NCBI GenBank assembly: GCA_002269645.1
Contig: NIVC01003537.1
Location: forward strand, 1-64,000
Reading direction: 5' to 3'
Source of the DNA: Macrostomum lignano
Taxonomy: Eukaryota
Length of the DNA: 64,000 nucleotides
Shown: positions 28,104 to 57,530 of the stretch, piece by piece
How the letters are laid out: the number at the start of each line of letters is the position of its first letter
Position numbering within the stretch: the stretch's first letter is position 1
Made by a program: the position numbers and the translations under genes
Notes under the pieces: generated by a model
Told to the model about the DNA's origin: nothing
The model's input: the letters and a program-made list of their open reading frames with translations, nothing else
Databases searched by the model: none

Positions 28104-28828
28104 TTGACCAAATGGACAGGACTACCTGTTCCTGGTGTTGGAAGCAGCTACGCTTTGGATCCTGAGTTGGACACTTTGCTGGAAGAGCTTGTTGATCTCG
28201 GAGCTGAAATAACGGCTGAGCACGAGTATCGTGAACTCAACGATACTGAGCTCGGTGGTATTCAGGATATGGAGAAGTCGGCTCGAACCCAGTCAACGGA
28301 TGCAAAGACTAAACAGCACGTTGCTCTGCTGAAGCAGTTTTTGCGCTCCAATGGTCTACCCGAAAACATCGAAGACATGCCAGTGCGCTACCTGGTGCAA
28401 TACCTGAGGCTCTGGTTTGTTTCACTCAAGCGGAAGGATGGTAACGTCTATAGTGTCAACAGTCTGGTAGGATTTCGTGCCAGCATTCATTGCTATCTGA
28501 AACAGGAGCGGGACGTTGACATGATTGGGAATGAGCTGTTTAATGCTTTTGAGCGTACGTATAAGGCGATGCTAACTGCTTCTGTGAAAGCTGCACGTAT
28601 TCTCGAAGAAGCGACTGGCTCCCGCCAGATTTAAGATTCCGACTTAAAGAAGCTTTCTTCGTACTTCGACCGCAGTGATCCTATAATTTCTTTCTGATTG
28701 CTTGGCATTTTGGTTTTCGAGGCCGTGAGTGGGTTCGAGAGCTGGCCCCTGATGCCATCATTTTCGGCACCGATGGCGGTCGTGAATGCATCGCTCTCAA
28801 GATTGACCGGCAAAGAGAAAAATGCTGA
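28104..28828 (+). pseudogene. Crypton-type tyrosine recombinase fragment (DUF3504/KCTD1-ZMYM-like), truncated
   Basis: YLRLWFVSLKRKDGNVYSVNSL..FRASIHCYL followed, after frameshifts, by WHFGFRGREWVREL (codons at 28703-28729), which carries the first catalytic Arg. Confidence 0.8.
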
Positions 28829-30110: not shown

Positions 30111-30929
30111 CGAACTTGGTTGGGGCCTGGAGAAGCCGTTGACGTTGATTCTTTTTACTGCTATATTTTGGCGTCAGGGTCTCCATCCAGCAATCCGAAG
30201 TTTCCGACGTTAGTCGACGTCCCGACATGTCTATCGACATCTACATGCACATGTATGTCAGGACTTTTACTTTTCTTCGTCGATTTCTTCAACAGCCACC
30301 CACTGATACCTCTTGTCAATCAGTGATATTTTGCATTTTTAATTCTAACGTAGATAAAAAATTGAGTATTTGTGTTGTGACGGCTTGAGTTCTTACATCG
30401 CTTTAGTGCTCCGTCGTTTTCAAGTCTTTGGTGAGAAATAATTGGCATTTAAATATTTTTTCTACTTAAGTTTATATCTCTGTACGTACTGGTTGACCTG
30501 TCAATCAAAATAGTTTATCGATTTTTTTGTTTCAATTTTAATCTTTAAGTTTCTAAAAACGACTATAAAAACGTTTTGAATTTCCCTCCAAGCTGCATGT
30601 TGTCTGGTTTGTCAACCGATCGTCTCTCTTGGCTTGTGCTGGCTCTATTTACCATACATGTAGTCACAATGCCTCTATATCCAGTACAACCATGGCATCG
30701 AAGGGACTTAATTAACACCACGAAGTGGCTGGCACCGAAATGTCTGGCCACCAAAAAAGTGTCTGCAGCACCAATTTGTCTGGCACTGAAGTGTCTGGTA
30801 TTAATTAAAAAATTCACTCGCCAGACTCAATTCTGAGAGAAACACTTCGTGATCCCCGACAGCAATACGACGTCGGCGTTTGATCATTCAGCGGAGAGGA
30901 TGTTCATTCAGATGGTCTTCCAATGTGGA

Positions 30930-33390
30930 TGTTGGCCGGTCTCGCGTGTGGGATTGGGCGTGCGCGCTTTTACTCCGTTCGTGATTTCAACTCCGTACGT
31001 GCGGGTGCTCATCACACTCTGCACGTCTCCTGCTCCATGATCATAGGTTTGACGGACATTGTACACCATTGGTGTTTTAGTCCCGTGGATTCGGATGGCT
31101 GCAATTGAATCTCACGTCTGTAAGAAATTGTCTCGTAAGAAATCGTTGTTGTCAGTGCGCTTGGCACTTCGTCTCTCCTCGCATACTCTTTGCGATCTCG
31201 GCTTGCTCTTTTAACATTTTGGCATCGCGAACAGGATATCATATTGAATGTCCATAAAGCTGCGGGACCCATCTGAGTTGCGAGCATGGATCAAAGTTTT
31301 TGATACCCAGGCGCTGGTCAAAAGGAGTGAAGGACACTGATCGCACTGATGACACAGCTGGCAATCTGGTGCCTTCCTTGGCTGTCTTGGTATGGCACAG
31401 CTCATCAGGCACCAGCTGGTTGCGCCCAAACCGCTCTCGCAGATGAAGTGGACGGAAATCAAGGAGTGCCTCGTGAGGTTTCTGGAACCCAAGAAGAGGC
31501 TGCTTGATTGCCGTGAGAGCAGCCTTCATTTCCATGCGCCAGTTAGAGGGCGGGACGATTGCCGGCTTCGCTGCCCGACTTCAAGAGCAAGTGGTGTTCT
31601 GCGAATTCGAGAAGCTGAAGGGCGAGAATGTTAATCCAGCTGAGCAGCTGATCAATACCACTTTTGTCAGCAGTTTCCCGCGCCCTCTTGAGCTAGCTTT
31701 TGACTGCCGCTGGTCGTAATAACTGGAAGTTAACGAGAAACCGCTCCCGCTATCCCGCTACCCCACACTGCAAGCCCGGAAGGATATCCTGACGAGGCGT
31801 GCACCCCTGCGAGCTGTCAAATCTGCACAGAGTTCTGAGTTCCCACGTCTCGTTTATTTGCTCAACCGGGAGTCTCCCTCATCAAAGGCCAAGCCCCAAG
31901 CTGGTGGCAGCAACTACGAGCGTATATTGCCAAAGCTACTAGAAGGCTTCCAAGAATCAGCAGGAAACCTAAGGTAGATTACTTAAGTGCTGAAATCAAG
32001 CGGGAAACCCCTGTACTACAAAAGTCTTGGCAGAGTTCTTTGTGAGCCAGATCACTGAGAGTACATGTACATGTACAGCAACTTCAGATGGTGAGCAAAT
32101 TTTCGGTGGAAGACGGTCTGGTGATCCACGGAACCAAAATTGTGCCTCCGGTTGTCTCCGCAGGCGCATCCTGGAGGTGGCACACGACGAGATTCACGAC
32201 GACAACCACCAAGGCGCACGCACATCTCCAAAGAGTTCTGGTGGGCTGGGTTTCTATCGCGATGTCCGCAGCTTTGTGTGAAGCTGCCAGCAGTACTCAG
32301 AACTCTGAGGTGCTCAGGACTCCTACTCGGGGTGGCCTGAGGTGATCCAGGTGCCAGACTGAACTGCGGGTTTTAAGAGCGCGTTGTTCACCAGGAACGG
32401 AGTGCCTCCTCGGACGCTGGCTGGGATTTAATTCGGAGAAAGTTTCCCAATGGCTGCGCAGCATCGGGTGCCAGGAGCCGCACACTCCACCGTACCATCC
32501 GGCCTCGAACGGTCAGGCAGAAAGGCTGGTGAGGATCATCAAGGATGGACTCAAGGCGTGGACGAAGATAGTGCCGTTCAACCACTTCTTGCAGAAAGTG
32601 CTGCTGACGATGAGGACCAGCCGACCCAGTAAAAATCTTTGCCACCAGTTAACGATGACTGCATGAGCAGGTGGTCGACTCAATCTGGCTGAGGATGCTC
32701 GCCGGGGTTCCGGCCATGCAATTTCGTGGTGCAGCACGGCCAGAACACGGCTCCGGTAGTCAGTGCTCTGGCCGGCCAAGAGCGTTTGAGTCGCTTTTGA
32801 GGGGGCCGAACCTGAGGCGGATCGTTGCCCGATAGCAGTTTCCTACGCCATGCAGGGTCGAGCAGTCGATCACACTAGTCTTTATAGCAGCTGACGGGCT
32901 GGGGCGCTGGATTAAACTGGTACACAGCTAGTCACGGGTGACTCAGATACATGTAGCTCAGAATCAGGGAGTTAACTCTTGTGACTTAACTCTTTGAATT
33001 TTTTTGCTGTTGTTTGGTTGGTGTCTTAATTTTTTTTTGCGAGGGCAGTATTGGGTCGCGTGTTAGGGGTTGGGCATTCGCTTTTACTCCGTAAGTTATA
33101 CTGTATTTTTCGTCCTGATTTTAACTCCGTGCGTGTGCTCATTGTCTATTGCTCACGCTCTTTTGCACGGGTCTCTGCTGTAAATTTATGTACATTCACA
33201 TGTACAATGCAAGTTACGAGAGTACGTGTAATATTGGTGTTCAGCCCTGGGTTAGGGTGGCTGCAATTATGAATCTCGCCTATAAATCGTCTCGCTGTTT
33301 GTCAGTGCACTTGGCACAATTTTGTCTTTCATCACGTACGTCGCTTTGCCTACGATTTATACTAATTCCTCGCCTCTGATCTACTGAACA
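30930..33390 (+). mobile_element. Internally deleted, degenerate gypsy (Mag-like) LTR retrotransposon
   Basis: Diverged direct LTRs at about 30930-31216 and 33049-33390, both ending AACA. PBS follows the 5' LTR. Gag LEPKKRL..F...Q..G.TIAGFAARL. Integrase pieces FSVEDGLVIHG and QAERLVRIIKDGLK. Purine tract before the 3' LTR. RT/RNase H absent; TSD not found. Confidence 0.8.
31220..31237 (+). promoter_or_regulatory. Primer-binding site TGGCATCGCGAACAGGAT
   Basis: TGG-initiated, 3 nt after the LTR-terminal CA. Complementary to a tRNA 3' end (Ser type from recollection, unverified). Confidence 0.7.
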
Positions 33391-36689: not shown

Positions 36690-37169
36690 ATTGATTTGGA
36701 TTTTCAACTTAATCTATTTATTTTGACTGCAAACTACTTTTTGCACCGTTGCTTATTTAAGTAGTATGTGTTGATTTTTTAAGACGCAAGTTTGTTAATT
36801 TTTTTATATTGAAACTGTCATTCAGTCTTTTAAGTAATTATTTTTAGTATATAGGATTTTTGTGTGCAAAAAATAATGAAAAAAATATACTAGCTGTTCG
36901 GTAGAAGCTGCTGATTTTTATTGCCTTGAGTAGATCATTAAAACCTGAAGAATTTGTGTCATTTACTCGTACTTTGCTTAGCAGCCTCCTTGGGACCAGC
37001 AATCATTGGTCCCTCACTCTAGCAAGGCATCGGAGGAATAAAAATTGAAGTTCACATTTAAAATAACTTGCATGCTTATAAGATACTTTGTTAGTTTTGT
37101 ACCAATAACGATGTTTAAAAAATAAAGGCATTACCATTGGCATCGGGCTTTCCAGCATCCATATCCTTG

Positions 37170-40100
37170 AGCATGGAATCTCAGCAACTCCCCATTGAGC
37201 CATGAAATCTCAGCAACTCCCCATTGAGCCATGGCATCTCAGCAACTCCCCTTGAGCCATGGCATCTCAGCAACTCCCCATTGAGCCATGGCATCTCAGC
37301 AACTCCCCTTAAGCTTTGTCATCTCAGCAACTCCCCCTTAAGCATTGTCATCTCAGCAACTCCCCTTGAGCCATGGCATCTCAGCAACTCCCCTTAAGCC
37401 TTGTCATCTCAGCAACTCCCCTTAAGCCTTGTCATCTCAGCATCTCCGCTTAAGCCATGTCATCTCAGCAACTCCCCTTGAGCCATGGCATCTCAGCAAC
37501 TCCCCATTGAGCCATGGCATCTCAGCAACTCCCCTTAAGCTTTGTCATCTCAGCAACTCCCCATTGAGCCATGGCATCTCAGCAACTCCCCTTGAGCCAT
37601 GGCATCTCAGCAACTCCCCATTGAGCCATGGCATCTCAGCAACTCCCCTTAAGCTTTGTCATCTCAGCAACTCCCCATTGAGCCATGGCATCTCAGCAAC
37701 TCCCCTTAAGCCTTGTCATCTCAGCAACTCCCCCATTGAGCCATGGCATCTCAGCAACTACCCCATTGAGCCATGGCATCTCAGCAACTCCCCATTGAGC
37801 CATGGCATCTCAGCAACTCCCCATTGAGCCATGGCATCTCAGCAACTCCCCTTAAGCCTTGTCATCTCAGCAACTCCCCATTGAGCCATGGCATCTCAGC
37901 AACTCCCCTTGAGCCATGGCATCTCAGCAACTCCCCATTGAGCCATGGCATCTCAGCAACTCCCCTTAAGCTTTGTCATCTCAGCAACTCCCCTTAAGCC
38001 TAGTCATCTCAGCAACTACCCTTGAGCCATGACATCGATCAGCAACTCCCCTTAAGCTTTGTCATCTCAGCAACTCCCCATTGAGCCATGGCATCTCAGC
38101 AACTCCCCTTAAGCCTTGTCATCTCAGCAACTCCCCATTGAGCCATGGCATCTCAGCAACTACCCCATTGAGCCATGGCATCTCAGCAACTCCCCATTGA
38201 GCCATGGCATCTCAGCAACTCCCCTTAAGCTTTGTCATCTCAGCAACTCCCCATTGAGCCATGGCATCAGCAACTCCCCTTAAGCATTGTCATCTCAGCA
38301 ACTCCCCTTGAGCCATGGCATCTCAGCAACTCCCCTTAAGCCTTGTCATCTCAGCAACTCCCCTTAAGCCTTGTCATCTCAGCATCTCCCCTTAAGCCAT
38401 GTCATCTCAGCAACTCCCCTTAAGCCATGTCATCTCAGCAACTCCCCATTGAGCCATGGCATCTCAGCAACTCCCCTTAAGCCTTGTCATCTCAGCAACT
38501 CCCCTTAAGCCATGTCATCTCAGCAACTCCCCTTGAGCCATGGCATCTCAGCAACTCCCCCATTGAGCCAAGGCATCTCAGAAACTCCCCATTGAGCCAT
38601 GGCATCTCAGCAACTCCCCATTGAGCCATGGCATCTCAGCAACTCCCCATTGAGCCATGGCATCTCAGCAACTCCCCATTGAGCCATGGCATCTCAGCAA
38701 CTCCCCTTAAGCCTATAGTCATCTCAGCAACTACCCTTGAGCCATGGCATCTCAGCAACTCCCCTTAAGCATTGTCATCTCAGCAACTCCCCTTGAGCCA
38801 TGGCATCTCAGCAACTCCCCTTAAGCCTTGTCATCTCAGCAACTCCCCTTAAGCCTTGTCATCTCAGCATCTCCCCTTAAGCCATGTCATCGCAGCAACT
38901 CCGCTTAAGCCTTGTCATCTCAGCAACTCACCTTAAGCCTTGTCATCTCAGCAACTCCCCTTAAGCCATGTCATCTCAGCAACTCCCCTTAAGCCTTGTC
39001 ATCTCAGCAACTCCCCTTAAGCCATGTCATCTCAGCAACTCCCCCTTGAGCCATGGCATCTCAGCAACTCCCCCATTGAGCCAAGGCATCTCAGAAACTC
39101 CCCATTGAGCCATGGCATCTCAGCAACTCCCCATTGAGCCATGGCATCTCAGCAACTCCCCATTGAGCCATGGCATCTCAGCAACTCCCCATTGAGCCAT
39201 GGCATCTCAGCAACTCCCCTTAAGCCTATAGTCATCTCAGCAACTACCCTTGATCCATGGCATCTCAGCAACTCCCCATTGAGCCATGGCATCTCAGCAA
39301 CTCCCCTTAAGCCTATAGTCATCTCAGCAACTACCCTTGAGCCATGGCATCTCAGCAACTCCCCTTAAGCATTGTCATCTCAGCAACTCCCCTTGAGCCA
39401 TGGCATCTCAGCAACTCCCCTTAAGCCTTGTCATCTCAGCAACTCCCCTTAAGCCTTGTCATCTCAGCATCTCCCCTTAAGCCATGTCATCTCAGCAACT
39501 CCCCTTAAGCCATGGCATCTCAGCAACTCCCCATTGAGCCATGGCATCTCAGCAACTCCCCTTAAGCCTTGTCATCTCAGCAACTCCCCTTAAGACATGT
39601 CATCTCAGCAACTCCCCCTTGAGCCATGGCATCTCATCAACTCCCCCATTGAGCCAAGGCATCTCAGCAACTCCCCATTGAGCCATGGCATCTCAGCAAC
39701 TACCCTTGATCCATGGCATCTCAGCAACTCCCCATTGAGCCATGGCATCTCAGCAACTCCCCTTAAGCCTATAGTCATCTCAGCAACTACCCTTGAGCCA
39801 TGGCATCTCAGCAACTCCCCTTAAGCATTGTCATCTCAGCAACTCCCCTTGAGCCATGGCATCTCAGCAACTCCCCTTAAGCCTTGTCATCTCAGCAACT
39901 CCCCTTAAGCCTTGTCATCTCAGCATCTCCCCTTAAGCCATGTCATCTCAGCAACTCCCCTTAAGCCATGGCATCTCAGCAACTCCCCATTGAGCCATGG
40001 CATCTCAGCAACTCCCCTTAAGCCTTGTCATCTCAGCAACTCCCCTTAAGACATGTCATCTCAGCAACTCCCCCTTGAGCCATGGCATCTCATCAACTCC

Positions 40101-40280
40101 CCCATTGAGCCAAGGCATCTCAGCAACTCCCCATTGAGCCATGGCATCTCAGAAACTCCCCATTGAGCCATGGCATCTCAGCAACTCCCCATTGAGCCAT
40201 GGCATCTCAGCAACTCCCCATTGAGCCATGGCATCTCAGCAACTCCCCCATTGAGCCATGGCATCTCAGCAACTCCCCCA
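37170..40280 (+). repeat. 26-28-bp satellite (GAGCCATGGCATCTCAGCAACTCCCC(A/C)TT / AAGCCTTGTCATCTCAGCAACTCCCC), about 3.1 kb
   Basis: Continuous tandem array with two main unit variants and block duplications. Confidence 0.97.
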
Positions 40281-40763
40281 TGGCATCCCAGCTTTGAGTA
40301 AAAACCACTTCCTTTATGTAAATATACACGTACATATACATGTCGATGCTGCAGAAACTCATGTGTGTAGTTCTACGAGTATTTACTAGAATCTCTTGTA
40401 CTGCCAAGCACGTGACGTTCAGCTCCAAAACTTCCCGTGAGAAAGCAGCAGGCCTGAGATCTGTGAGCCGCTTCTCACTGCTGCCACTACTGAGGGCTCT
40501 GCGGCCTCACTCTGGCGGCCTCAGCAACTCGGCTGCTGTCACGATCGCAGCTCCACAGTGAAACGTGACTCGGACAGCCACATCGGACCTGCAACTGCAG
40601 CAGAGCCTCAGCTGAGGCCGCGCCACTCAATCTGGCGAGATCCCACGCCCTCCACGCATTCCAGCAGCAGCTCGGGTGGATAAATGCCGACTCGCAATGC
40701 CTGCTCAAATTTGCAACTCAAAGTGGCCGCTCCAATCAGCGACTCCCATTGGCGACTCAGCAA

Positions 40764-41558
40764 ATGCAGCACCGCCAGCTACTCGCTGCCTGCCTCGCCG
40801 CAGCCACTGCAGCTCTGGTGCTCACCGGCGCCTCTGCTCAGTGTCCCGGACACGGCTCTGCACCTGACAGAGGCGTCACCCCACCTGTGGACGGCCTCGT
40901 GGCTGCGTTCGATTTCAGGAGGGGCCTGCACAACCTGGTGGACCCGCGCGCCTTTGCCATCGAGGACCAGTTTGGCGTGGAGAGGTCGGCAGAGGACGGG
41001 GCCTGCTTCAAGCAGAATTCAAGTGCCAGATACAGGGAGTTCTACAATGTCGGAGCTCCCATGGCATTCAATGAGTCGATCTGGAACTCAGCAGAGTGGA
41101 CCATGTACTTCAGGCTGACTCGGAGCAGCGGCAGCTGGGTTCGTTTTCTGTCGGTTCCGAGCGACCATTTGCGCCCGGATGGGGTGCTAAACGTTTATGC
41201 TGTCATTGATCAATATTCTAGAAACAGGTTTAGATTTTATGTTGGGCAACATGACCTTCGAAGCCGGCATTATAACGAGCACCACTTCTACGGATCGGGC
41301 TGTGCTGGCAGCTGGTGCGACATTCGGCTGGCAATGAAGAATCACATTTTGGATTCTCCTGCCATCGGATGGCCGCTGAGTTCTGATTATCAGAAGTTTA
41401 CTGATTTTGTTAATGAACTGGGACTGCAGCAGCTGCAGATTGGAAATCTTTATCCATCTTCTGGTTCCCAGCGGCTCTGCGTGAGGTGCTTCGGGGTCGC
41501 CCGCAGGCAGCTGAGCGCCCATGAGGTGCGGCAGGCGATGTCGGCTTTCTGCCCCTGA
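40764..41558 (+). CDS. Secreted protein, lectin-cluster copy A: signal peptide plus ConA/LamG-like domain only (intronless)
   Basis: Open ORF. Hydrophobic leader MQHRQLLAACLAAATAALVLTGASAQ. Clear paralogue of 49295-50968, lacking both C-type lectin domains in frame. The ConA/LamG-like fold is inferred from GLVAAFDF and WTMYFRL only. Confidence 0.8.
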   Translation: MQHRQLLAACLAAATAALVLTGASAQCPGHGSAPDRGVTPPVDGLVAAFDFRRGLHNLVDPRAFAIEDQFGVERSAEDGACFKQNSSARYREFYNVGAPMAFNESIWNSAEWTMYFRLTRSSGSWVRFLSVPSDHLRPDGVLNVYAVIDQYSRNRFRFYVGQHDLRSRHYNEHHFYGSGCAGSWCDIRLAMKNHILDSPAIGWPLSSDYQKFTDFVNELGLQQLQIGNLYPSSGSQRLCVRCFGVARRQLSAHEVRQAMSAFCP

Positions 41559-42229
41559 GACTGCGGCTGCAAGCAGTGGGCCTGGCCACTAAAATGCATT
41601 ACGTAGTCGTTTTGTCTTCTTCCGAAAGTCTGTCGGTTTGTCTGTCTGTCCAGTCTGGTTTCTGTCTGTTTATCTTGACAAATTAAATGGTGCCTCAGAG
41701 CCAAGTTGGTGACGCTCTTCCTGAGTGTCCCGAATGTACGAAATTACAATATACGATCTTAGCTGCATATACAGCATTGCAAAAACTTTGATTGCCCTCA
41801 GCAATGATACCGGTGTAGCTGATGAAGTTCAAGGAAGCTAGGCACACTTGTGACCTTGGCCATTGTTCAAAATGTCTATGGTAATTACGATAAGGTAATG
41901 ACATTCAAGCAATGACCGGAAAACGAACGCTGAGATTAAAAAAGTAGTCTATGTTTGTAAGTGTGGACTTCGCCCCCACACCCCATTCGCCCTTGCCACT
42001 CGGATCCTGATGGTCAAATTGAATAATGAAGCTAGCTGGAAGTGGCGATAGCCGCTCATGTCTATGGCCATTACCATGAATTCTCACTTCCTGACAACCC
42101 CCCATTAACTTAAACCCTCGCTTCGTATTACATGTAGCTGCATTAATTGAATTGTCTAAGGCCGAAACAGACGGAAATGTAAATGACGATGCTTACACTT
42201 CATGTCAATGGCCAGTCCCATAGAATGCA

Positions 42230-42425
42230 TTGGTCAATCAGTTGTCTATGGCTAAAATTGGCGGCCACTGGCCATTTTTCGCCCAGATGAGGTGCTGCCA
42301 CCAAATTAATACCTTTATGCTGGCATTAATAAAACTTCTGGGGACAGGTTTGAATTTTATGTTGGGGAACATGACCTTGCGATCCAACATTATAACGAGC
42401 ACTACTTCGATGAATTTGGCTGTGA
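42230..42425 (+). pseudogene. Lectin-cluster relic C (middle of the C-terminal domain)
   Basis: DRFEFYVGEHDLAIQHYNEHYFDEFGC aligns to copy A NRFRFYVGQHDLRSRHYNEHHFYGSGC. In-frame stop upstream; truncated at about 42425. Confidence 0.75.
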
Positions 42426-42919
42426 CGCTTCCGACTGGCGCGCAGGGTCCGCCCTCTTGTGGGATGTCGGCTCCTCCGCGGGATTGAGTTGCCAGCACTC
42501 TCCAGAGGCGGCAGAAGGGGCGGCTTTCGCACTCCTGGCCGTTCCTCCGCTTTGCGCTTGAGAAAAGCTTTGTAGCGAGCAATGCTACGGGCCTTCTTTT
42601 TAGAGGTCTGAGGTCCGCCGTCCTGTTGTCCAGCCACTTCGGTATTGTCCTGAGTGGCGACAGAAGCTGACTAAGAGTCACCGGAGGTCCCGGTGTTGCG
42701 AATGTCCGGCTGGGCGGCGATACCAACCGCAGTTGGCGCTCCAGCAGCCTCGGACGTGTTGCAAGTAAATGAATACTCCATGAGTCGCTGAAAGGTGAAT
42801 GGGGACTAGAGGTGAGAAGCTGCTGGGCCGAAACCCCAAACCCAACAGCCAGCCAAAATATAGCGACCCGGGGTGCTTAGGCCCTTACCGGCCCGACCGC
42901 TAGCAACCGAGAAACTACC

Positions 42920-44560
42920 CGGCTAAGAGCCCGGCTTGGAGAGACCATACGCTCGTAGGCCGAACCAAAGGAACATCAGCGCGGTACTACACTGGTAGGC
43001 TGTCCGCATCCTGTTAAGGTCAGAGGGTGATACCTGTTCTTCAGAGCCGTGGCCAGAGGTACCTGATACGCACAGGTTCACTTCCGGACGGAGCCCGTAC
43101 CCAAATCGGCCAAGACAGAAGCCAAGGCCACGGATGGGGTGCAGGTGTAGGATACAATTCCGATAATTCTGTGCTGTGGTCGGTCTGCACTTTGCGGCCG
43201 ATCTGGTCTGATGGCGTTGGTTGCTCTTTGTGGCAAAGTCATCCAGTTCATGCCAGGTCTTCATGTTTGGATTTTCCAGCTTTTTGCTTTCTTCTGATTG
43301 AAGAACGAGCTTAGCCAGACCATATTCAAGCTCTCTTGCCATGTTCGAAGTTACTCACCTTGTTAGTTTGTCCAGCCGATACCATGTTGGCCTGCGCTCG
43401 TGAAGAGGGTCGCTGCTCCTCGAACGATGTTTGAGGTCCAGTCACCTTGCACCCGAAATCACACATTGGAAAGCGCGCGTTTCTGTGGGTGCATTTTTAT
43501 GCCTCCTGTGTTCCACAGGTGCCATGCAGTCTCATTTAGTAAGATTAGTAGGTTTCCTTATTCTCATGGTGAAACACTGATGCCGGTGCCTTGCAAGGTC
43601 ACATCCCAGCTCGATGACGCTTTCTTTACTATCTGTCCGAGTCTCGCTGAGCCCAGGTTTGCCCGCTGCACGTTCCACATCGCGATTCTCACTTTCTTCT
43701 GGTTCCAGATTCTTTGCGCAGCTTCTAAACGTTGTTTGTTCCTTTATTTTACGGTGTTTCTCTCTCTCTTCGCGTTTCGACGCCTGTTCCTTGCCCTTCT
43801 CTGCTCACTGGTTCCCGGTCCAGGTTTGCAATTTGGTTCGTATTCGCGATCCGCTAACTCTTCCGCTAACTCTTCCGCTAACTCTTCCGCTAACTCTTCC
43901 GCTAACTCTTCCGCTAACTCTTCCGCTAACTCTTCCGCTAACTCTTCCGCTAACTCTTCCGCTAACTCTTCCGCTAACTCTTCCGCTAACTCTTCCGCTA
44001 ACTCTTCCGCTAACTCTTCCGCTAACTCTTCCGCTAACTCTTCCGCTAACTCTTCCGCTAACTCTTCCGCTAACTCTTCCGCTAACTCTTCCGCTAACTC
44101 TTCCGCTAACTCTTCCGCTAACTCTTCCGCTAACTCTTCCGCTAACTCTTCAGTCTTCCGTGTGCCGCGTCGCTGCCACCCGATAGGCTTTCCTCTAACC
44201 CTAAGCCGTCGGTCATATCGTCCTCTGATGTCGGTGTGTCGTCTTCGCCAGAAGGGGCTCTGTGGCTATCGTCCAGCTGGTCGTTAAGTACTTCTCTTCT
44301 TCTGTGTGAGTTGATCGGTCTTCCAGGACAATGTCAGAAATTTCGTTAATCCTGTCCTGTCCCGTCCTTGATAGCGTCTCTGCCTTTCGCACAAATTTTC
44401 CAGTTCTCTTATTAGACTTCGACAGACAATTTCGCGCGGTAGCTAATAAGTGAGCAGATTCAGCAGGTATCAAGTAGGTTGAGCAATGGCTAGAGTTACG
44501 ATCATGCGCTTCCGGCAGGTTGCAGTGATGAGCCATTGTACAATAATTCTTAATAAGCAA
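42920..44560 (-). mobile_element. Degenerate APE-type non-LTR retrotransposon (RTE-like) 5' part, without RT
   Basis: Minus strand KVRIAMWNVQRANL (about 43660-43700) is the APE endonuclease first motif. Downstream DDFATK and GRFGYG resemble RTE GDFNAK and GKFGLG. Stops and frameshifts present. Confidence 0.6.
43850..44149. repeat. Perfect 12-bp tandem repeat (TCCGCTAACTCT)25
   Basis: 300 bp with no variant units. Reads (EELA)n on the minus strand. Confidence 0.97.
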
Positions 44561-45537
44561 TAAAATTCTACTCTTCCGGCTAAAGCAATTTCAATAATAT
44601 CAGTCGGCACATATGGCTGGATTTGACAGGCCTTTTTGCCTCAATTTTAGCGGACAGCACCTGGGATCAAGTCAACAGGTCATTTGCTGTGCCACATGAC
44701 AAGGCTGGTTCCAATAGCCAAGCCACAACGTCTCAAACATCTGGTTCTGTTGACGCCAGCACCCTACTAGCATTGCGTGATGCTTTCTAGTCCGCTCTCT
44801 GTCACGCTGTAGGCTCGTATGACTGCCTAGCAGACATCGCAGTCCAGAGTTTTCATCGTGGACTCCGTCTGACGAGGCAACCAGACAGCGGTTAAAATCA
44901 ATATCGCCTGCATATGCACCGATCCGTCTAGCTTAACTACGCGGTTTATTATTTCTATTTTTATAAATATTTTTATAGCTAGTAAATTAACGAACACAAT
45001 AATCAACACATTGCACTGCAACTCAGCCTTCCGCCACACGTCGTCCTCCAGCTCTGGTTCTTAGCCGCTCATGTCTTCTTGGCTAGATGGTTGGAAGACA
45101 CTGCCGATCTTCCATGAAATCCTTCCTGAGACTCCGGAAAGTCAGGGAACCAGTATAGGCCACAAACAAGTGCGCTGTTCCGAATTACCAATAGGTCTTG
45201 TGTAACTTTAAAACTCTTCTGTTCGACCACAAGTTTGTTCGTCCGCCAGCTGGAAATTTGTTCTTCTTTTTACCCGTTTATATTTATATTGTAAAAACTG
45301 TCTCCTGCACAATGAACTCCTGCTGAACTCCATGGTCTTGCTGTCCTTGGGCTGATCGGCTGATTGTTGATGTGGGTACTGTTGTGATCGTTGATGCAGC
45401 TGCTGGTGGTGGGGTGTGCCTAGCTACGTCGGGTGCCTTGGACAAAGGCTAGCGTCCACAACGTTGGGGCCTACTAAACTTTGGTCCCCTCGCTCCAGGC
45501 TCACATTGGGTCCTCTCGTTGCCGTCCAGCCTCGTCC

Positions 45538-45650
45538 AGGTGACACGACCAAGTGACACGACCAGGTACGACACGACCAGGTGACACGACCAGGTACGAC
45601 ACGACCAAGTGACGCGACCAGGTACGACACGACCAGGTGATACGACCTAG
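45538..45650. repeat. GACACGACCA(G/A)GT short tandem repeat
   Basis: About eight 13-15 bp units. Confidence 0.8.
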
Positions 45651-46548
45651 CCTATCCCCGTTCCTATACTTATGAGCAATTTCTTATGGCTCATAATTTA
45701 TATTGAGATCGAATAGTAGACACGTTATTTCAGTTTCAAGTTTTGTAACTAAATTGAACTTATAGTATCGATACTTTCTAAAACAAAAAAAACTTTTTCA
45801 ACCTTTTTTAAAACTCTTCAACTAGTAAAAGTTTCGAAAAAAATTAACTGCAAGAATTTCAAAATGCTTTTCAAGCCAAAGAGCTGCAGATAATTGAAAA
45901 TTAAGGTTTTATGTATCGAAGTTACGAGCTATTTTCTATTTTATTTTTTAACTAAATTAATTCAGTGGAGAAAAGCCCTGGTCGGTTAAACTGATTGATT
46001 GAACTGATGGTTGTATTAAAGTTGTACTTTTGTGCCCAATTTTTAACTGATTGCAATGAGCAATTTAACTGAGGGATAGGATGCCCCTCAGCCCAATGAA
46101 GCCCAATGATCATGGGATCTCGTGCTTGGGTTTCAAAAATAGCTGAAGTATAATTGCAAAAATTTAAATTAAACTCACAACAATTATTACAAACAATTTG
46201 TCATTGGTTAGTTGTCTATATGATTTCTACCTATATGATTCTATATGATATTGAACGAAGCTTAGTTTACTTATACATGTAGGACTTTATAACGGCATTT
46301 TCTATGCCTGAAGCCCTCCCGCTTGGAAAATGTTGTGCCGATGCCTTTTACTCGTAGTTAAAACCATCCCAGAAGTCGGAAAAAATTAGTTAAATTGAAA
46401 TTTACGAGTTATACCCGAATTTGTCTACTGCTGCAGTAGCGCGCAAAGATTTTTTAGCAGTAGTGTGACCCAAGTAGGAAATTCGAGATTTAGGAATTTA
46501 GTAAGATTCAGTAAGTTACGAGCATAGTTTATTTTTTAATTATAAATA

Positions 46549-47467
46549 CGTTTATTAATTTCCCGGAAAAGTTCACTTCTGGTGGTTGCATCTGCACGAA
46601 ATTTTACCTGCAGCAACTGCAGTCTGTAATCACTTCTCAACATAACTTCCTGTGGCGCCTTGCTGCAGCGCTGCGTCGGAGGAAAATGGCCGCCATCATT
46701 TTGCCGATGCTGCGATTGCGACGAAACTTGAGAGGAGCATCTTCGTCGTTGATAACCCACTGCCGACTCTGCTCCTTGGTCTCATGGGTCGTAGAAGTAG
46801 ACCGAAGGTTCTTTGCCAGTGAGGATGTTATCCACCAACTTTCAGCGGCCTCCGTCAAACCTTGGCCGCCATGAGGTCGGCGAGCTCAACGCGGGCTTGC
46901 ATCTGGTCAGGGCTGAGCTGGTGGGGCACCCAGCGAGCGGACAGCTTCGTCATTTCAAGGTGCTGGTGCAGGATCTTAATGATGGTGGAATCCGACACCC
47001 CGACGAGCTGCTCCAACCAGCCAATCGCCACTCACCGATCTTCGTCTAAATGGCGTCGAACAGCAGCAACGACTCCGTCGGACACAGTCGAACTCGGCCG
47101 CCAATCACGAGGATCGTCGTCCAGAGTGGCCGAGCCGCAGCGGAAGCGTGCAAACCACTCATACAGCATCGACTGGGATGGCGCTTGATCCTGAAGAGCC
47201 TCACGCAGCGTCTGGAGTCATGTGGCTGCAGAGCTGCCCAGCCGAAACTGGACCGGGATTGCCACTCGCCTGTCGCGGTCAGTCATCTGTGGCAGCAGGG
47301 CGGCACGTTTTCGGCCAAACTTTGGACATTGCAGCGCATCGTTGCGACCGATTGAGTTGAAATTTTACAAGCGAACGTTGAACATCCAACTCCAACTGCT
47401 GGTTAAGTTTCGTTTGATTTTCGCATTTTTAAGCTGCATTTTCCGGGAACTTAATAAGCACCGCTCG
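46549..47467 (-). mobile_element. Internally deleted mariner (Tc1/mariner) element
   Basis: TA flanks. TIR core TTATTAA(G/T)TTCCCGGAAAA at both ends (left TIR has a small deletion). Transposase motifs YEWFARFR.G, KLSARWVPHQL, YFYDP.TKEQSRQW, IGKMMAAIF. C-terminal half missing. Confidence 0.9.
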
Positions 47468-47520
47468 TAGCCTTAGAAAGAGTCGGAATACAGAATAGAA
47501 TTATCTTTCCTTTCCTTTCC

Positions 47521-47800
47521 TTGCATTTCCTTAATCATATCAACAAGCACGACTCCAACGGCAGCTGGTCCGACATTCAACTGGCAATAAAGAACCGCAT
47601 TTTGGATTCTCCTGCCATCGGACGGTCGCTGGGCGTTCAATATCGGAACTGGACTGATGGGACTCATGAAGTGGGACTGCAGCAGCTGCAGCTCGGAAAT
47701 TATTATTTACTTCTGTGTGAGCTGCTTCGGAGTCACCCGCAGGCAGCTGAGCGCCGATGAGGTGCGGCAAGCGATGTCGGCCTTCTGCCCCCGAGTATAA
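47521..47800 (+). pseudogene. Lectin-cluster relic D (3' half of the C-terminal domain)
   Basis: GSWSDIQLAIKNRILDSPAIG...GLQQLQLG...FGVTRRQLSADEVRQAMSAFCP with small frameshifts. 5' part lost next to the mariner. Confidence 0.8.
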
Positions 47801-48032
47801 GGCTAGAATTTGCGTCACTGAGCATCCGGATCCAGCACCGGCTGCAACCGCGATAACAGCATCCGGTTGAGCAGCCTCGCAGCGCAGGACTGAAGGCAGA
47901 GGCCTCTGTGCTCATTCAGGATTGTGGTAGCTACCCGGCTTCTTTGGAACGTGACGACCCATACCAATGGGAAACTTGGCGGTTTATGCCGCTATACACT
48001 GTGCACCTTGTGTGAGCGTGTGTACGAGCACA

Positions 48033-48300
48033 GGGGTTATAGCCTAATGGTTCGAGCGTTGGAATCACGACTGAAAGGTCGGGGGTTCGATTCTCGACAC
48101 ACTCGGAACAATTTGTGTCCTCGAGCAAGACACTTAACTTTGCATTGCTTCTATGAAAGAACGCATTTTCACAGTCCAGCTGTAAAATGCGTGCCAGCAT
48201 TAGCTGGGGTTATTGAGGCTGAGTGTGGCGACCCCCCCCCTCCCCTCAGTCCTTGGACTGAACAGCCGTACGCAGCTTTCAGATGCGCTGTGCAATAGCT
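48033..48300 (+). mobile_element. tRNA-derived SINE with a CORE/V-like central domain
   Basis: A-box TAGCCTAATGG, B-box GGTTCGATTC, then TGTGTCCTCGAGCAAGACACTTAAC and CCAGCTGTAAAATG, which resemble conserved SINE core domains. Confidence 0.75.
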
Positions 48301-49294
48301 GCGGCTGAGCTGTCGGTTGCACAACTGCCTAGCAATGCCCACATTTGCATATGTGGTCCACCTGTGTACGAGTACCCTGCAACCGACTGCTCCGCTCTCC
48401 TGGTGTTATGACGCTCTGGCAAAGAAGGAACTATTTACGCCTTGCCTTAGCCTAACAAGTTTCCCATAAAGAATTACTTAAGCGGGCGGCTTACCAGAGG
48501 GGGGCAGAAGGCCCTACTGGCTAAGCCCTCAACCAAGCCACAGGGCCAGCCAATCAAAACCCCGCCCGGGGCAGGGTGCAGCACCCGGCACGCACGCCAA
48601 CCCCCCCCCCAGCCACCCCCAAAGTGCACCGAGCCCTGCCATACCAAGGGCACATGCACTACACCTGTATGCAGCTAGTAAGATTAAGCAACAGTCAAAA
48701 GTTCCAACCCTCCAAGCGAAATAAAAAATTCCTCACTTATTGCGACAACTTTTCACCCACAATTCAACTCTCAAGTTACGCAACTGAGTCACCGCGAGGA
48801 AGGGAAAATTAATAGAATCAATAGCTCGTACTAGTGATGAACGTCAGTCGCACAAAATCATAACGCGCTTAGTAACGCGTGTGGGATCCTCTCGCACGCA
48901 GAAAGTCCTAGGGAAGCTGCTGCCAAGCGTTTCAATGGCATGACGGAGCTCCGCAACATGCTGTGGTGGATTCTCTTATCGAATGCTGCGTTTTAGGAAG
49001 TCCCAGACATGCTCGATGGGATTCATGTGTGGGGACCATTAAGCAGACCCAAGCCGACCCCAGTGGCAGTAAGCTTTGCGCCTGCCGTAAGTTGCGTCAC
49101 TCGCAATAAGTGAAGCTTATGACAGTTGCTGGCAATACATTGTATTTGATTAATCGATAACTGATTGGGTACATTCAAAGACTTTGGAGAAACACCACCA
49201 AGGCATGATAGCCATATAACCACCATCAAACTGAACTGATTCGTCAAGCCATACCGTAAGAATGCGTCAAAATCTTCAGCATAGCCGCAGCTCT

Positions 49295-50968
49295 TTAGGG
49301 GCAGAAGGTCGACATCGCCTGACGCACTTCGTCGGAGCTCAGCCGCCTGCGGGCGACTCCGAAGCACCTCAGGCAGATTTTCCGAGCTTCAGAATAAAAC
49401 GGCGACCCGAATCCAACACGGAGCTGCTGCAGTCCCAATACATCCGCATCGAATGTCGAGTTCCAATATTGAACTCTCAGCGGCTCTCTGATGGCAGGAG
49501 AATCCAAAATGCCATCCTTGATTGCCAGCCGAATGTCGCACCAGTTGCCAGCACAGCCCGATCCGTTGAACTCGTGGTTGTTGTTATGCACGGTGAAATG
49601 CGTTGAGTTCCCGAGGTCGCGTTGCAGAACGTTTAAAACGAACTGCTCAGCACTGGAGGAATAGAGCTCAGCACGGAGGCTTGAGTACGAATTCGGATCG
49701 GAGTGCTCGCTGCGCACAGACAGAAACTCGACGCCACTTTTATTGCCTACGGTAAGCCTAAAGTACATTGTGTACTCTGATGTACTGAGAATCGACTCAT
49801 TGAATGCCACGGGAGCTCCGACATTGTAGAACTCCCTGTATCTGGCACTTGAATTCGCCTTGAAGCAGGCCCCGTCCTCTGCCGACCTCTCCACGCCAAA
49901 CTGGTCCTCGATGGCGAAGGTGCGCGGGTCCAACAGGTTGTGCAGGCCCCTCCTGAAATCGAACGCAGCCACGAGGCCGTCCACCTGCGGCGGCGGCGAC
50001 GCAGACGGCGGTGGCGGGGAGTTGCCGTCCGACGCCTCCGTCTTGCACACGAACCTGTGCCTGCTGTGGCACCTGTCGCTGCGCAGTCGACCAGCTGACA
50101 GCGTGACGCAGTTCACAGTCCAGTCCGCACTGTCCGGGTGTCCAGTCTCCCATGCGGGCAGCTTGTTGTCGTGTTTCCCTGAGAAATCCGTCCACTGGTA
50201 GCAGAGCTCGCGACCCGCACTGTCAGGGAAGCAGGGGTTCAGCTTGATGAGGCCGAGCCACACCGAGTCGAGCAGCTCTGCCGACTCGCAGCTGTCGATT
50301 CCGAAGCTGAGCTTGTTCACAAAGTCCAGCTCAGACTGGGTGAGCACCGACGCCAGCTGCGACGAGTTTCGCTGGCAGTAGAAGTTGGCCTCGTTGAAGT
50401 TGGCCTCAAACTGCGGCATCACGTAGCACTGCTTGTCGTGCAGCCACCAGCCGCTGGGACATCGGCCCTTCGACCGCCACCACAAGTCGACGAGACTGCT
50501 GGAGTTGGCGCTCAACTTGCACACAAACGGGTGCCGCTCGTGATACAGCGAGTTGAGCCACCACTCACCGTCACTTCGGATCAGAGGCTTGTGAACGCTG
50601 TCCAGCTGAGAGAAGTTGTGTCTCTCGAAGCTACCTACGCCGCCGCCGTCCGTCCACCTGTAGCTTGTAGGGTCGGCCAGACGGTCGAGGTCGGTGCCGA
50701 ACAAACCGATCCAGGCGTCTCTGCAGTGAGACAGTCGGCCTACCAGTCGGTTCTCTTGCTCACTTTGGATGGACGCGAGCTGAGCCCGGTGAGACAGACA
50801 CGTCTGCTCGGCCTGAAACCAGTAGTTCGGCTCACTGAACCACTTGTAGCATGAGTGAGCTCGGTGTGTCCAGCCGTGTCCGGGACACTGAGCAGAGGCG
50901 GCGCCGGTGAGCAGCAGAGCTGCAGTGGCTGCGGCGAGGGAGGCAGCGAGTAGCTGGCGGTGCTGCAT
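49295..50968 (-). CDS. Secreted lectin, copy B: signal peptide, two C-type lectin domains, Pro-rich linker, ConA/LamG-like domain (intronless)
   Basis: 562-aa open ORF. CTLD hallmarks CP.GW...CY, W..A...C....QLASI, WIGL/WLGL, WTD and FVCK occur twice. Linker SPPPPSASPPP. Confidence 0.9.
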   Translation of the reverse strand: MQHRQLLAASLAAATAALLLTGAASAQCPGHGWTHRAHSCYKWFSEPNYWFQAEQTCLSHRAQLASIQSEQENRLVGRLSHCRDAWIGLFGTDLDRLADPTSYRWTDGGGVGSFERHNFSQLDSVHKPLIRSDGEWWLNSLYHERHPFVCKLSANSSSLVDLWWRSKGRCPSGWWLHDKQCYVMPQFEANFNEANFYCQRNSSQLASVLTQSELDFVNKLSFGIDSCESAELLDSVWLGLIKLNPCFPDSAGRELCYQWTDFSGKHDNKLPAWETGHPDSADWTVNCVTLSAGRLRSDRCHSRHRFVCKTEASDGNSPPPPSASPPPQVDGLVAAFDFRRGLHNLLDPRTFAIEDQFGVERSAEDGACFKANSSARYREFYNVGAPVAFNESILSTSEYTMYFRLTVGNKSGVEFLSVRSEHSDPNSYSSLRAELYSSSAEQFVLNVLQRDLGNSTHFTVHNNNHEFNGSGCAGNWCDIRLAIKDGILDSPAIREPLRVQYWNSTFDADVLGLQQLRVGFGSPFYSEARKICLRCFGVARRRLSSDEVRQAMSTFCP

Positions 50969-51439
50969 TTGCTGAGTCGCCAATGGGAGTCGCTGATTGG
51001 AGCGGCCACTTTGAGTTGCAAATTTGAGCAGGCATTGCGAGTCGGCATTTATCCACTCGAGCTGCTGCTGGAATGCGTGGAGGGCGTGGAATCTCGCCAG
51101 ATTGAGTGGCGCGGCCTCAGCTGAGGCTCTGCTGCAGTTGCAGGTCCGATGTGGCTGTCCGAGTCACGTTTCACTGTGGAGCTGCGATCGTGACAGCAGC
51201 CGAGTTGCTGAGGCCGCCAGAGTGAGGCCGCAGAGCCCTCAGTAGTGGCAGCCGTGTGAGAAGCGGCTCACAGATCTCAGGTCTGCTGCTTTCTCACGGG
51301 AAGTTTTGGAGCGAAACGTCACGGGCTTGAGAGTGCAGGAGATTCAAGTACATAAAGCTACACAGGTTTCCTTTTACGTGCCAGTTTTTTGCTGCATCAA
51401 CATGTACGAGCGTATAAAGACTGCGGCCTCTATGCAAAG

Positions 51440-51848
51440 CTGAGATGCCAAGGCTCAATGGGGGAATTGCTGAGATGCCCAATGGCTCAATGGGGGAGTT
51501 GCTGAGATGCCATGGCTCAATGGGGGAGTTGCTGAGATGCCATGGCTCAATGGGGGAGTTGCTGAGATGCCATGGCTCAATGGGGGAGTTGCTGAGATGC
51601 CATGGCTCAATGGGGGGGAGTTGCTGAGATGCCAAGGCTCAATGGGGGAGTTGCTGAGATGCCAAGGCTCAATGGGGGGGAGTTGCTGAGATGCCAAGGC
51701 TCAATGGGGGAGTTGCTGAGATGCCATGGCTCAATGGGGGGGAGTTGCTGAGATGCCAAGGCTCAATGGGGGAGTTGCTGAGATGCCAAGGCTCAATGGG
51801 GGAGTTGCTGAGATGCCATGGCTCAATGGGGGAGTTGCTGAGATGCCA
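51440..51848 (-). repeat. Same 26-28-bp satellite as 37170-40280, inverted, about 0.4 kb
   Basis: gagttgctgagatgccatggctcaatgggg units are the reverse complement of the upstream array. Confidence 0.95.
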
Positions 51849-51865
51849 GTTGGCCAGGTCAGGCC

Positions 51866-51940
51866 AGGTCAGTCCAGGCGTCTCTGCAGTGAGACAGTTG
51901 GCCTACCAATCGGTTCTCTGGCTCACTTTGGATTGACTCG
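51866..51940 (-). pseudogene. Lectin-cluster relic E (duplicated piece of CTLD1)
   Basis: ccaggcgtctctgcagtgagacagttggcctaccaatcggttctc nearly matches 50712-50770. Confidence 0.75.
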
Positions 51941-53013: not shown

Positions 53014-54650
<1,637 letters not shown>

Positions 54651-55825: not shown

Positions 55826-56232
55826 CGTCAGGATATCTATAGTTGGGTTTCAGGATGTCTATAGTTGGGTGTCAGGATGTCTATATTGAGTGTCATGATG
55901 TCTATAGTTGAGTGTCAGGATGTCTATAGTTGAGTGTCAGGATGTCTATAGTTGGGTTTCAGGATGTCTATAGTTGAGTGTCAGGATGTCTATATTGAGT
56001 GTCAGGATGTCTATAGTTGAGTGTCAGGATGTCTATAGTTGAGTGTCAGGATGTCTATAGTTGAGTGTCAGAATGTCTATATTGAGTGTCAGGATGTCTA
56101 TAGTTGACTGTCAGGATGTCTATAGTTGAGTGTCAGGATGTCTATAGTTGAGTGTCAGCATGTCTATAGTTGAGTGTCAGGATATCTATAGTTGAGTGTC
56201 AGGATGTCTATATTGAGTGTCAGGATGTCTAT
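55826..56232. repeat. 22-bp minisatellite GAGTGTCAGGATGTCTATAGTT
   Basis: About 18 units. Confidence 0.95.
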
Positions 56233-56826
56233 AAATGTATATCTAGGAGATTGAAATTGAGAGCTACCTGAAAACATCAGTATGGGACATGCATATTGAG
56301 TTGCATATCTATTGGCCGGTTGCAGTCATTGGCCAATGAAATATTGATTAAAATAGCCTTACATCTGCATGTATAGATAAAGTATTCATAGTGGCACGGG
56401 TGACACTGCATCAGTAAAGCGGCACTATTCAGCCATTTGAAACTCAAATCATAACTAATAAAACCGATGGCTATGCAAGAAGTGGCACTCATGATGGAGC
56501 CGCTGGAATATTGGACCAACAGGCGACTGAAGGGCACCGCATCAGCCAGCGACAACAGCGATGACTACGCGGCAGGTGCTTCATCATCGGTGCCAATCGA
56601 TGCTCAAGGATGCTGCAGAGATGACAGGAGCGGCAGAAGGATCGTCTGCTCAGCTCTGGTGCTGCTGCTCCTGCTCACTCTGCTGCTGCTGTTGCTGCTG
56701 CAGAGGTCAGTAGAGGCCCGAATTAGCGGCGGCAACATCAAAGGAGGAGAAGGAACAGCGACTGTGCCGATGAGTGCTTGCAATGAGACTGCGGACTGCG
56801 CTTGACCTGGGAATGGGGCCAGCTGA

Positions 56827-57530
56827 GGTCACTGGATTAGAATGAAGGTCATTTGAGGTCACTGGACTAGAATGAAGGTCAGTTGAGGTCATTGGATTAG
56901 AATGAAGGTCACTTGAGGTCACTGGATTAGAATGAAGGTCAGTTGAAGTCATTGGATTAGAATGAAGGTCATTTGAGGTCATTGGATTAGGATGAAGGTC
57001 AGTTGAAGTCATTGGATTAGAATGAGGGTCATCTGAGGTCATTGGATTAGAATGAGGGTCATCTGAGGTCATTGGATTAGAATGAGGGTCATCTGAGGTC
57101 ATTGGATTAGAATGAAGGTCAGTTGAAGTCATTGGATTAGAATGAAGGTCATCAGAGGTCATTGGATTAGGATGAAGGTCATCAGAGGTCATTGGACTAG
57201 AATGAAGGTCACTTGAGGTCATTGGGTTAGAATGAAGGTTATCAGAGGTCACTAAATTAGAATGAGGGTCATCTGAGGTCACTGGACTAGAATGAGGGTC
57301 ACCTGAGGTCTTTGGATTAAAATGAAGTTCACCTGAGGTCATATGATCAGGATTAGAGACACTTAAGGTCATTGTATGAGGGTGAGAATGAGGGTCACCT
57401 GAGGTCATTGGATTAAAATGAGGGTCGCCAAGATCATAAGATCAGAATTAGGGTCACCTGAGGTCATATGATTGCAAAGAGGGTCATCTGAAGTCATTGG
57501 ATTAGAATAGGCGGTCATCTGAGGTCATGG
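56827..57530. repeat. 30-bp minisatellite (GAATGA(A/G)GGTCATCTGAGGTCATTGGATTA) carrying a DR4 motif
   Basis: About 20 units, degenerating towards the 3' end. Confidence 0.92.

Follow-up and report, generated by a model that had tools for sequence, protein, structure and literature searches.

The window analysed here, 64,000 nucleotides of contig NIVC01003537.1 of the flatworm Macrostomum lignano (assembly GCA_002269645.1; window and record share one numbering), carries two intronless genes, A and B, together with the relics C, D, and E. The locus is read, with a probability of about 0.6, as part of a multigene family restricted to M. lignano, whose intronless genes encode secreted glycoproteins with a constant pair of C-type lectin-like domains (CTLDs) and a variable, probable jelly-roll domain, and which evolves by birth and death together with gene conversion. 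A sequence-only reading of the same DNA is upheld in its observations and in part of its interpretation; it overlooked the dominant process, by which the 5′ half has been made uniform in all copies while the 3′ domain is old and mosaic.

Gene B (49295–50968, minus strand; ATG at 50968, stop at 49297–49295) encodes 557 aa and is covered by the single-exon gene model P0001. It features a signal peptide (50968–50891), CTLD1 (50890–50516), CTLD2 (50464–50042), a Pro-rich linker (50041–49985), and a C-terminal six-cysteine domain (49984–49298). Gene A (40764–41558, plus strand, ATG to stop) encodes 264 aa as judged by translation of its open reading frame (ORF) and consists of a signal peptide (40764–40838), the stub QCPGHG (40839–40856), a single linker unit SAPDRGVTPP (40857–40886), and the C-terminal domain (40887–41555), followed by the stop codon (41556–41558). 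The two genes lie tail to tail at a separation of 7.7 kb. Their ORFs are exactly those given by the sequence-only reading, which had also read the junction of A (QCPGHG/SAPDRGVTPP/VDGLVAAF) correctly and had assigned to B the order signal peptide, CTLD, CTLD, linker, and terminal domain—an order retained here, with the signal peptide recognised by inspection and the CTLDs as two Lectin_C stretches. Gene A also bears out its observation that the terminal domain occurs without CTLDs.

The signal peptide of B, read by eye from the sequence as MQHRQLLAASLAAATAALLLTGAASA/QC, ends in an AXA motif (ASA/QC), and no hydrophobic segment is found downstream of it. The two stretches matching Pfam Lectin_C (PF00059) reach 70.3 bits (cut-off 22.6), and the paralogues P0002 and P0005 behave alike. 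The WIGL-type core motif and the C1–C4 disulfide cysteines, with the N-terminal pair of the long form, are present: AWIGLF in CTLD1; VWLGLI in CTLD2; and, in each of them, the CPxxGW...CY hairpin and a terminal FVCK. The exception is CTLD1, which is devoid of the C2–C3 cysteine pair. The best PDB matches of the pair are tandem CTLDs of FcRY, DEC-205, and PLA2R (E 2e-19 to 5e-12). By profile and motif, the CTLDs of B are true, non-canonical members of the CTLD superfamily. B carries nine NxS/T N-glycosylation sites. The linker, a mucin-like stalk of variable length, is rich in Thr, Ser, and Pro and is built in the paralogous loci L001, L003, L005, L007 (copies L007a and L007b), and L009, not in B, from an 8-residue unit, TSAPDGGV, which occurs in 0 to at least 15 copies across the paralogues.

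The C-terminal domain spans 223–231 residues across the family (229 in B), and every copy shares its six cysteines without exception. Gene A yields no Pfam match, but its last 223 aa are 63% identical to B. Searches of four paralogous C-terminal domains against Pfam profiles at E values up to 10 gave no match, including to Laminin_G, pentraxin, legume-lectin, and GH16, and a profile search of the PDB with the domain gave no sequence match. When 1.84 billion representative proteins were searched with HMMER in filter-only mode, M. lignano proteins and two weak matches were all that came up. A match to P0007 was rejected as a tandem-repeat artefact. P0006, a protein from outside the window, is a 2629-aa bacterial-looking chain of eight tandem copies of an unannotated domain of ~215 aa, followed by cadherin-like and Big_9 domains; its repeat, which has no Pfam and no PDB match, bears a weak similarity to the flatworm domain in the region of the TMYFRL strand. 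It was not used as a homologue, since hhalign gave only 51% probability over 56 columns.

AlphaFold2 models of the domain in B and in A are all-β, approximately 12-stranded β-sandwiches with predicted N-terminal and C-terminal helices, at predicted local distance difference test (pLDDT) values of 48.9 and 43.7—both below 50, from an alignment limited to four sequences. With both low-confidence models, Foldseek matches fall exclusively into the ConA-like lectin/glucanase superfamily at template modelling (TM) scores of 0.3–0.5: BoNT Hc-N, the trans-sialidase lectin domain, GH16, the LamG domains of Gas6, perlecan, neurexin, and agrin, and legume-lectin-like folds. The domain is probably a jelly roll of the ConA/LamG type, as suggested by these models. 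The term "ConA/LamG-like" used in the sequence-only reading thus stands weakly at the level of the fold and finds no counterpart at the level of sequence. The strand motifs TMYFRL and WCDIRLA and the ending FGVARRxLSxxEV are presumably LamG-like as well, which serves as a lead only.

A census built from the cluster members and their loci in one assembly comprises at least nine full-length copies—six intact and three with premature stops. The intact copies are B, its counterpart B′ on a second contig (L006), L001 (600 aa), L005 (647 aa), L007a (666 aa), and L007b (630 aa). An in-frame stop is present in L003 (TAG near the end, at 11171), L008 (codon 263 of an ORF starting at 6034), and L009 (inside the C-terminal domain, ORF from 6037). 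Each of these three has a single stop beyond which homology continues, as in young pseudogenes or sequencing errors. The copies are dispersed and do not form a single array: their neighbours include a kinesin and an MFS transporter, an ASC channel, a DUF3730 protein, and an EF-hand protein. The relatives are all M. lignano proteins. Taken together, the varying number of linker repeats (0 to at least 15), the relics C, D, and E in the window, and the three stop-bearing paralogues elsewhere clearly show birth and death, as the sequence-only reading had proposed; that this process acts together with concerted evolution is supported by the sequence comparisons of the family.

Several public gene models in the family deviate from the genomic ORFs, P0008 and P0012 among them. 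The model P0008 (239 aa) truncates an intact single-exon ORF of 647 aa (L005, 10121–12064), and P0012 is a chimaera over 22.7 kb, to which two successive tandem copies of L007 contribute the 5′ and the 3′ end, respectively; the intact tandem ORFs lie at 10136–12136 and 30826–32718. The wrong models were likely caused by the identical 5′ cassette.

The two halves of the genes differ in age. Over the signal peptide and the two CTLDs (313 codons), synonymous divergence (dS) is 0.010–0.030 in all 21 pairs of full-length copies, whereas in the same pairs the C-terminal domain has a dS of 0.12–2.0, with the exception of the twin pair B and B′ (0.019). In six pairs tested, the 5′ cassette has four synonymous differences over ~205 sites, and the C-terminal domain has 48–103 over ~150 (Fisher p 1e-16 to 5e-49). 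The near-identity begins 100–175 nt before the ATG and stops at the linker. Within the C-terminal domain, 20-codon windows feature tracts with zero synonymous differences per site (pS) that switch partners, with saturated stretches between them: A shares such tracts with B at residues 329–378 and 459–498 and with L003 and L005 at residues 379–408. Zero-synonymous tracts superimposed on old divergence are a signature of non-allelic gene conversion; selection at the amino acid level alone would not produce them. Pervasive positive selection was rejected as the source of the 3′ divergence because synonymous divergence is high as well and whole-domain dN/dS (non-synonymous to synonymous divergence) is 0.24–0.69 save in the youngest pairs.

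Gene A has lost 996 nt in frame relative to L001-type copies, namely both CTLDs and most of the linker repeats (junction at 40856..40857, plus strand, blastn coordinates of the DNA alignment). The breakpoints read ...CACGGCT/GGACAC... and ...GTCACCT/CTGCACC... and have only a 2-nt CT microhomology in common. In the DNA alignment, GT..AG is absent from the borders of the missing segment, and similarity between loci stops ~10–20 nt past the stop codon without an A-run. An origin of A by splicing or retroposition, as a processed retrogene, was rejected on the lack of GT..AG and of a poly(A) remnant. A keeps the six residues with which CTLD1 starts, QCPGHG, and one unit of the TSAPDGGV type, SAPDRGVTPP; because B lacks this unit, A derives from another, L005/L007b-like subtype. 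Its C-terminal domain is nearest to those of L005 and L007b (74–79% identity in aa, 84% in nt). By these alignments, A is an internal genomic deletion derivative of an L005/L007b-like paralogue and not a splicing product. The structure of A is due to the 996-bp deletion and not to the domain shuffling invoked in the sequence-only reading. Its modular domain combinations are supported by the CTLD pair, which occurs on a different tail in the distant paralogues P0005 and P0013.

Upstream, A resembles B. The stretch 40380–40857 aligns with 51354–50872 over 483 nt at 95.9% identity, with a 360-nt core at 98%, and contains the shared 5′ flank and 5′ untranslated region, ~385 bp long, of A (40380–40763, plus strand; 95.9% identity to 51354–50969) and of B (50969–51354, minus strand). 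The final ~100–175 nt of the flank of A are also 96% identical to the loci L001, L003, and L005. Farther upstream, each gene is preceded by the same minisatellite: ~109 copies of a 28-nt unit before A (37165–40278, plus strand, TRF) and ~13 copies of a 30-nt unit in reverse complement before B (51439–51848, minus strand). The consensus, CCTTGAGCCATGGCATCTCAGCAACTCC, has a unit of 28–30 nt, and its 22-nt core has 95 matches in the window versus 0 expected by chance, all of them inside these two arrays. Satellite, promoter region, and gene form an inverted duplication, and the shared 5′ region and satellite agree with the sequence-only reading. No copy of the satellite motif was found in four paralogous loci (L001, L003, L004, and L005). 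As far as the alignments of its two parts go, A is itself a mosaic—a gene of the other subtype placed behind a B-like upstream region and satellite.

In the mechanism proposed here, ectopic gene conversion would maintain the constant 5′ module and reshuffle the old, variable 3′ module, with the repeat linker setting the boundary of the conversion tracts. The proteins may act extracellularly as two-headed binders: the constant CTLD pair would engage a common partner and the diversified jelly-roll domain variable ligands. Such binding would fit recognition in mucus, on the body surface, in the gut, or in innate defence. Should A be expressed, its product would be the variable domain set free from the CTLD pair.

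Several observations weigh against parts of this reading. The canonical EPN/QPD and WND motifs (Ca2+ site 2) are absent from both CTLDs when aligned to DEC-205 CTLD2—CTLD2 carries GHPD, NCV, and RSD in place of EPN/QPD, E, and WND, and CTLD1 has no counterpart—so that carbohydrate binding is not implied. Of the label "lectins" in the sequence-only reading, the CTLDs stand, but lectin activity is not to be taken for granted. The pLDDT values given above leave the fold call of the C-terminal domain weak. In the youngest subgroup (A, L005, L007a, and L007b), the ratio of non-synonymous to synonymous differences per site (pN/pS) is 0.22–0.43 in the framework and 1.05–1.74 in two hypervariable segments (B residues 405–468 and 496–530), with values up to 4.5 in the second, HV2; this excess is not significant pair by pair, and the segments were defined after the variability had been viewed, which makes diversifying selection on them a lead and not a finding. 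Polishing of a three-copy assembly could slightly inflate the similarity of the 5′ cassette. A literature search by gene identifiers returned no paper naming the genes of the family. Finally, A has no gene model and is missing from the protein collection, and mature A contains seven cysteines, one of them unpaired, the partner of the cysteine in QC having been deleted.

The points on A also favour a different view, in which the cluster is decaying duplication debris, only the B-type full-length genes function, and A is a promoter-bearing pseudogene whose frame is open by chance, without any functional modular combination. A adjoins three dead fragments, the whole dN/dS of pairs including A is the highest in the family (0.57–1.04), and the probability that a 264-codon frame survives neutrally over the ~40 substitutions on the A branch is, by our own estimate, roughly 0.15. 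Against this stands the framework pN/pS of the A branch of 0.25, with 8 of 305 non-synonymous versus 9 of 85 synonymous sites changed (Fisher p 0.004), which is comparable with the intact paralogues L005 (0.28) and L007b (0.19) and indicates that the C-terminal domain was constrained for most of the separate history of A. In addition, the deletion is exactly in frame, the 5′ region of A is 96–98% conserved, and the copy A′ on the twin contig is identical to A. We consider this view possible, with the odds clearly against it. The near-identity of the 5′ halves could in turn stem from the recent spread of one cassette—promoter, signal peptide, CTLD pair, and linker—onto older genes composed of a signal peptide and a jelly roll, with A near the ancestral state and without ongoing conversion. 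The sharp age gap between the halves with its boundary at the repeat linker, the existence of a CTLD-less form in A, and the CTLD pair on another tail in P0005 and P0013 would suit such a spread. It is nevertheless quite improbable: the linker unit and QCPGHG kept in A, with microhomology at the joint, mark a deletion and not an ancestral state; the 5′ region of A is as young as that of the other copies; conversion-like zero-synonymous tracts also occur within the C-terminal domain; and the spread of a cassette would itself need non-allelic recombination.

That the inverted arrangement is an assembly artefact, by a chimeric or palindromic long-read join or by collapse of paralogues, is very improbable. 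The M. lignano assembly is a difficult one, with high repeat content and three subgenome copies at ~2% single-nucleotide polymorphism divergence in the reference (PMC10733133), and the 3-kb satellite could mislead an assembler. The arms, however, are not a perfect palindrome: 996 bp are missing from A, DNA identity between the C-terminal domains is only 76%, and one satellite array is eight times as long as the other. Moreover, contig NIVC01001483.1 (L006) is collinear with the window in the same orientation, starting with the PID and EF-hand genes, followed by a satellite, B′, D, C, A′, and a second satellite, with an identity of 99.94% over 39233–44103, 97.9% over 43898–51789, and 94–96% beyond. 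Such a twin contig is expected from the three subgenome copies; the arrangement is seen twice, yet both contigs derive from one read set. B′ differs from B by 19 nucleotides, which amount to seven synonymous and eleven non-synonymous codon changes. The palindromic artefact was rejected on the asymmetry of the arms and the twin contig, and the inversion described in the sequence-only reading is upheld. A separate alternative concerns the role of the proteins, which could act in reproduction—in seminal fluid, eggshell, or cement-gland secretion—with the fast domain reflecting sexual conflict. Nothing in the sequence contradicts such a role, and secreted, lineage-restricted, quickly diversifying proteins are typical of reproductive secretions; we regard it as unlikely. 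A search of the literature on M. lignano and C-type lectins found no description of such a protein.

Compared with known systems, the family features a familiar mode of evolution and an unfamiliar architecture. The best match of the two-CTLD module is the mannose receptor family (FcRY, DEC-205/Ly75, PLA2R, and Endo180), with alike inter-domain spacing, and most CTLDs of DEC-205 and PLA2R are, like those described here, devoid of canonical sugar-binding residues. Unlike the mannose receptor family, however, the proteins lack ricin-B, FNII, and a transmembrane segment, have two CTLDs instead of eight to ten, and are secreted and encoded without introns. Membership in the mannose receptor family was rejected because Pfam finds only two CTLDs and no transmembrane segment is present. 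With the ConA-like superfamily (LamG/LNS, GH16, legume-lectin-like, and BoNT Hc-N), the low-confidence models share a β-sandwich of ~12 strands and ~225 residues; they differ by the six invariant cysteines, the predicted N-terminal and C-terminal helices, the absence of a sequence match at any threshold tried, and TM scores of only 0.3–0.5. The adhesive protein Mlig-ap1, so far the one characterised CTLD protein of M. lignano, has secretion and a C-type lectin domain in common with the family (PMC6410801, PMC8621496), but it is a giant protein in which the CTLD is followed by vWD-C8-TIL and 17 EGF modules with flanking Lys/Arg-rich regions (PMC6410801). Neither these modules nor the Lys/Arg-rich regions are present in A and B. 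Identity with the M. lignano adhesive proteins was rejected on architecture.

Within the species, the distant paralogues P0005 and P0013 (BOX15_Mlig018359g1 and Mlig004171g1) share the signal peptide and the two-CTLD module at 47% identity to B, and in them an acidic, repetitive tail rich in Ser, Thr, Pro, and Glu replaces the C-terminal jelly-roll domain. Lineage-specific CTLD expansions are common. The FREPs of snails, the VCBPs of amphioxus, and the clec proteins of nematodes are lineage-specific secreted families with a conserved part and a diversified binding domain, shaped by duplication, loss, and non-allelic recombination. In contrast to these, the present family has no IgSF, fibrinogen, or chitin-binding domain, and it is the lectin-type domains that are constant and an orphan domain that is variable. 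The evolutionary mode is thus that of the familiar expanded invertebrate lectin families, whereas the combination of domains and the sharp split into a constant 5′ and a variable 3′ part are undescribed as far as our searches show. In this respect the sequence-only reading, which recognised the architecture from no described family, was right: the C-terminal domain has no match in Pfam, the PDB, or, outside M. lignano proteins and the weak matches noted, the 1.84 billion proteins searched.

M. lignano serves as a model for regeneration, adhesion, and sexual selection, yet annotation lists the genes of the family only as hypothetical proteins. They provide a compact, intronless case in which one half of a gene is in concerted evolution and the other has long been diversifying, in a recently polyploid genome. 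The family also provides a cysteine-stabilised domain without detectable relatives outside the genus by the searches run, and, in A, a natural truncation in which the variable domain stands apart from the lectin-like module. Were this domain a diversified ligand-binding head, it would be a new type of domain among invertebrate recognition repertoires. Taken to its furthest extent, this would amount to a constant-plus-variable recognition system specific to flatworms: a homogenised CTLD pair and glycosylated stalk as the constant part, and an orphan jelly-roll head as the variable part, whose hypervariable segments would be positively selected and reshuffled by conversion among ~10 loci with relics C and D as donors, yielding, in an animal devoid of adaptive immunity, a secreted repertoire of opsonins or agglutinins with A as a free head. 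This is a speculative extension that we hold to be a long shot.

The relics C, D, and E, noted in the sequence-only reading, are real, as each was mapped by tblastn. Relic C (42277–42432, plus strand) is a fragment of the C-terminal domain corresponding to residues 136–183 of A at 52% aa identity, with 79% nt identity to 41191–41304. Relic D (47518–47791, plus strand) corresponds to B residues 455–557, the 3′ third of the C-terminal domain, has an internal gap, and is nearest to the L005 type (83.6% in nt). Relic E (51865–51940, minus strand; tblastn match 51936–51865) is a piece of CTLD1 (B residues 66–89) of 68–72 nt with 93% nt identity to 50710–50777 and lies directly past the satellite. 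Adjoining the cluster, an EF-hand gene similar to myosin regulatory light chain (53014–54650, plus strand) has at least four exons, B being a single exon—the setting of intronless genes beside an intron-bearing host gene that had been read from the sequence. The first intron of the EF-hand gene contains an (ATCT)×108 microsatellite (53033–53464).

The segment around A (39233–44103, aligned with L006 21731–16863) diverges far less from its twin than the ~2% typical of subgenome copies; the identity of 99.94% could reflect recent conversion between the copies or an effect of the assembly. The interval from relic D to gene B contains a dispersed repeat of ~275 nt (48036–48312), which also occurs twice near the distant paralogue P0005 (L004, 4202–4308 and 8624–8875; 82–86% identity). 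Long minisatellite arrays (units of 12–32 nt) are unusually abundant in the window, further ones being located at 10334–11360, 43850–44151, 55827–56233, 56823–57528, 58790–60136, and 61426–63230. The array between relics C and D consists of 25 perfect copies of a 12-nt unit, and other arrays of the window reach 64 and 57 copies. An Rfam scan of the window gave no matches. Far upstream of the cluster, an ORF of 513 aa (17824–19365, plus strand) matches Pfam DUF4371 (E 9e-18) and resembles a hAT-type transposase; downstream of it, three ORFs of 157–176 aa (24584–25102, 26478–26951, and 28104–28634, plus strand), which have no Pfam match, may be parts of a mobile element.

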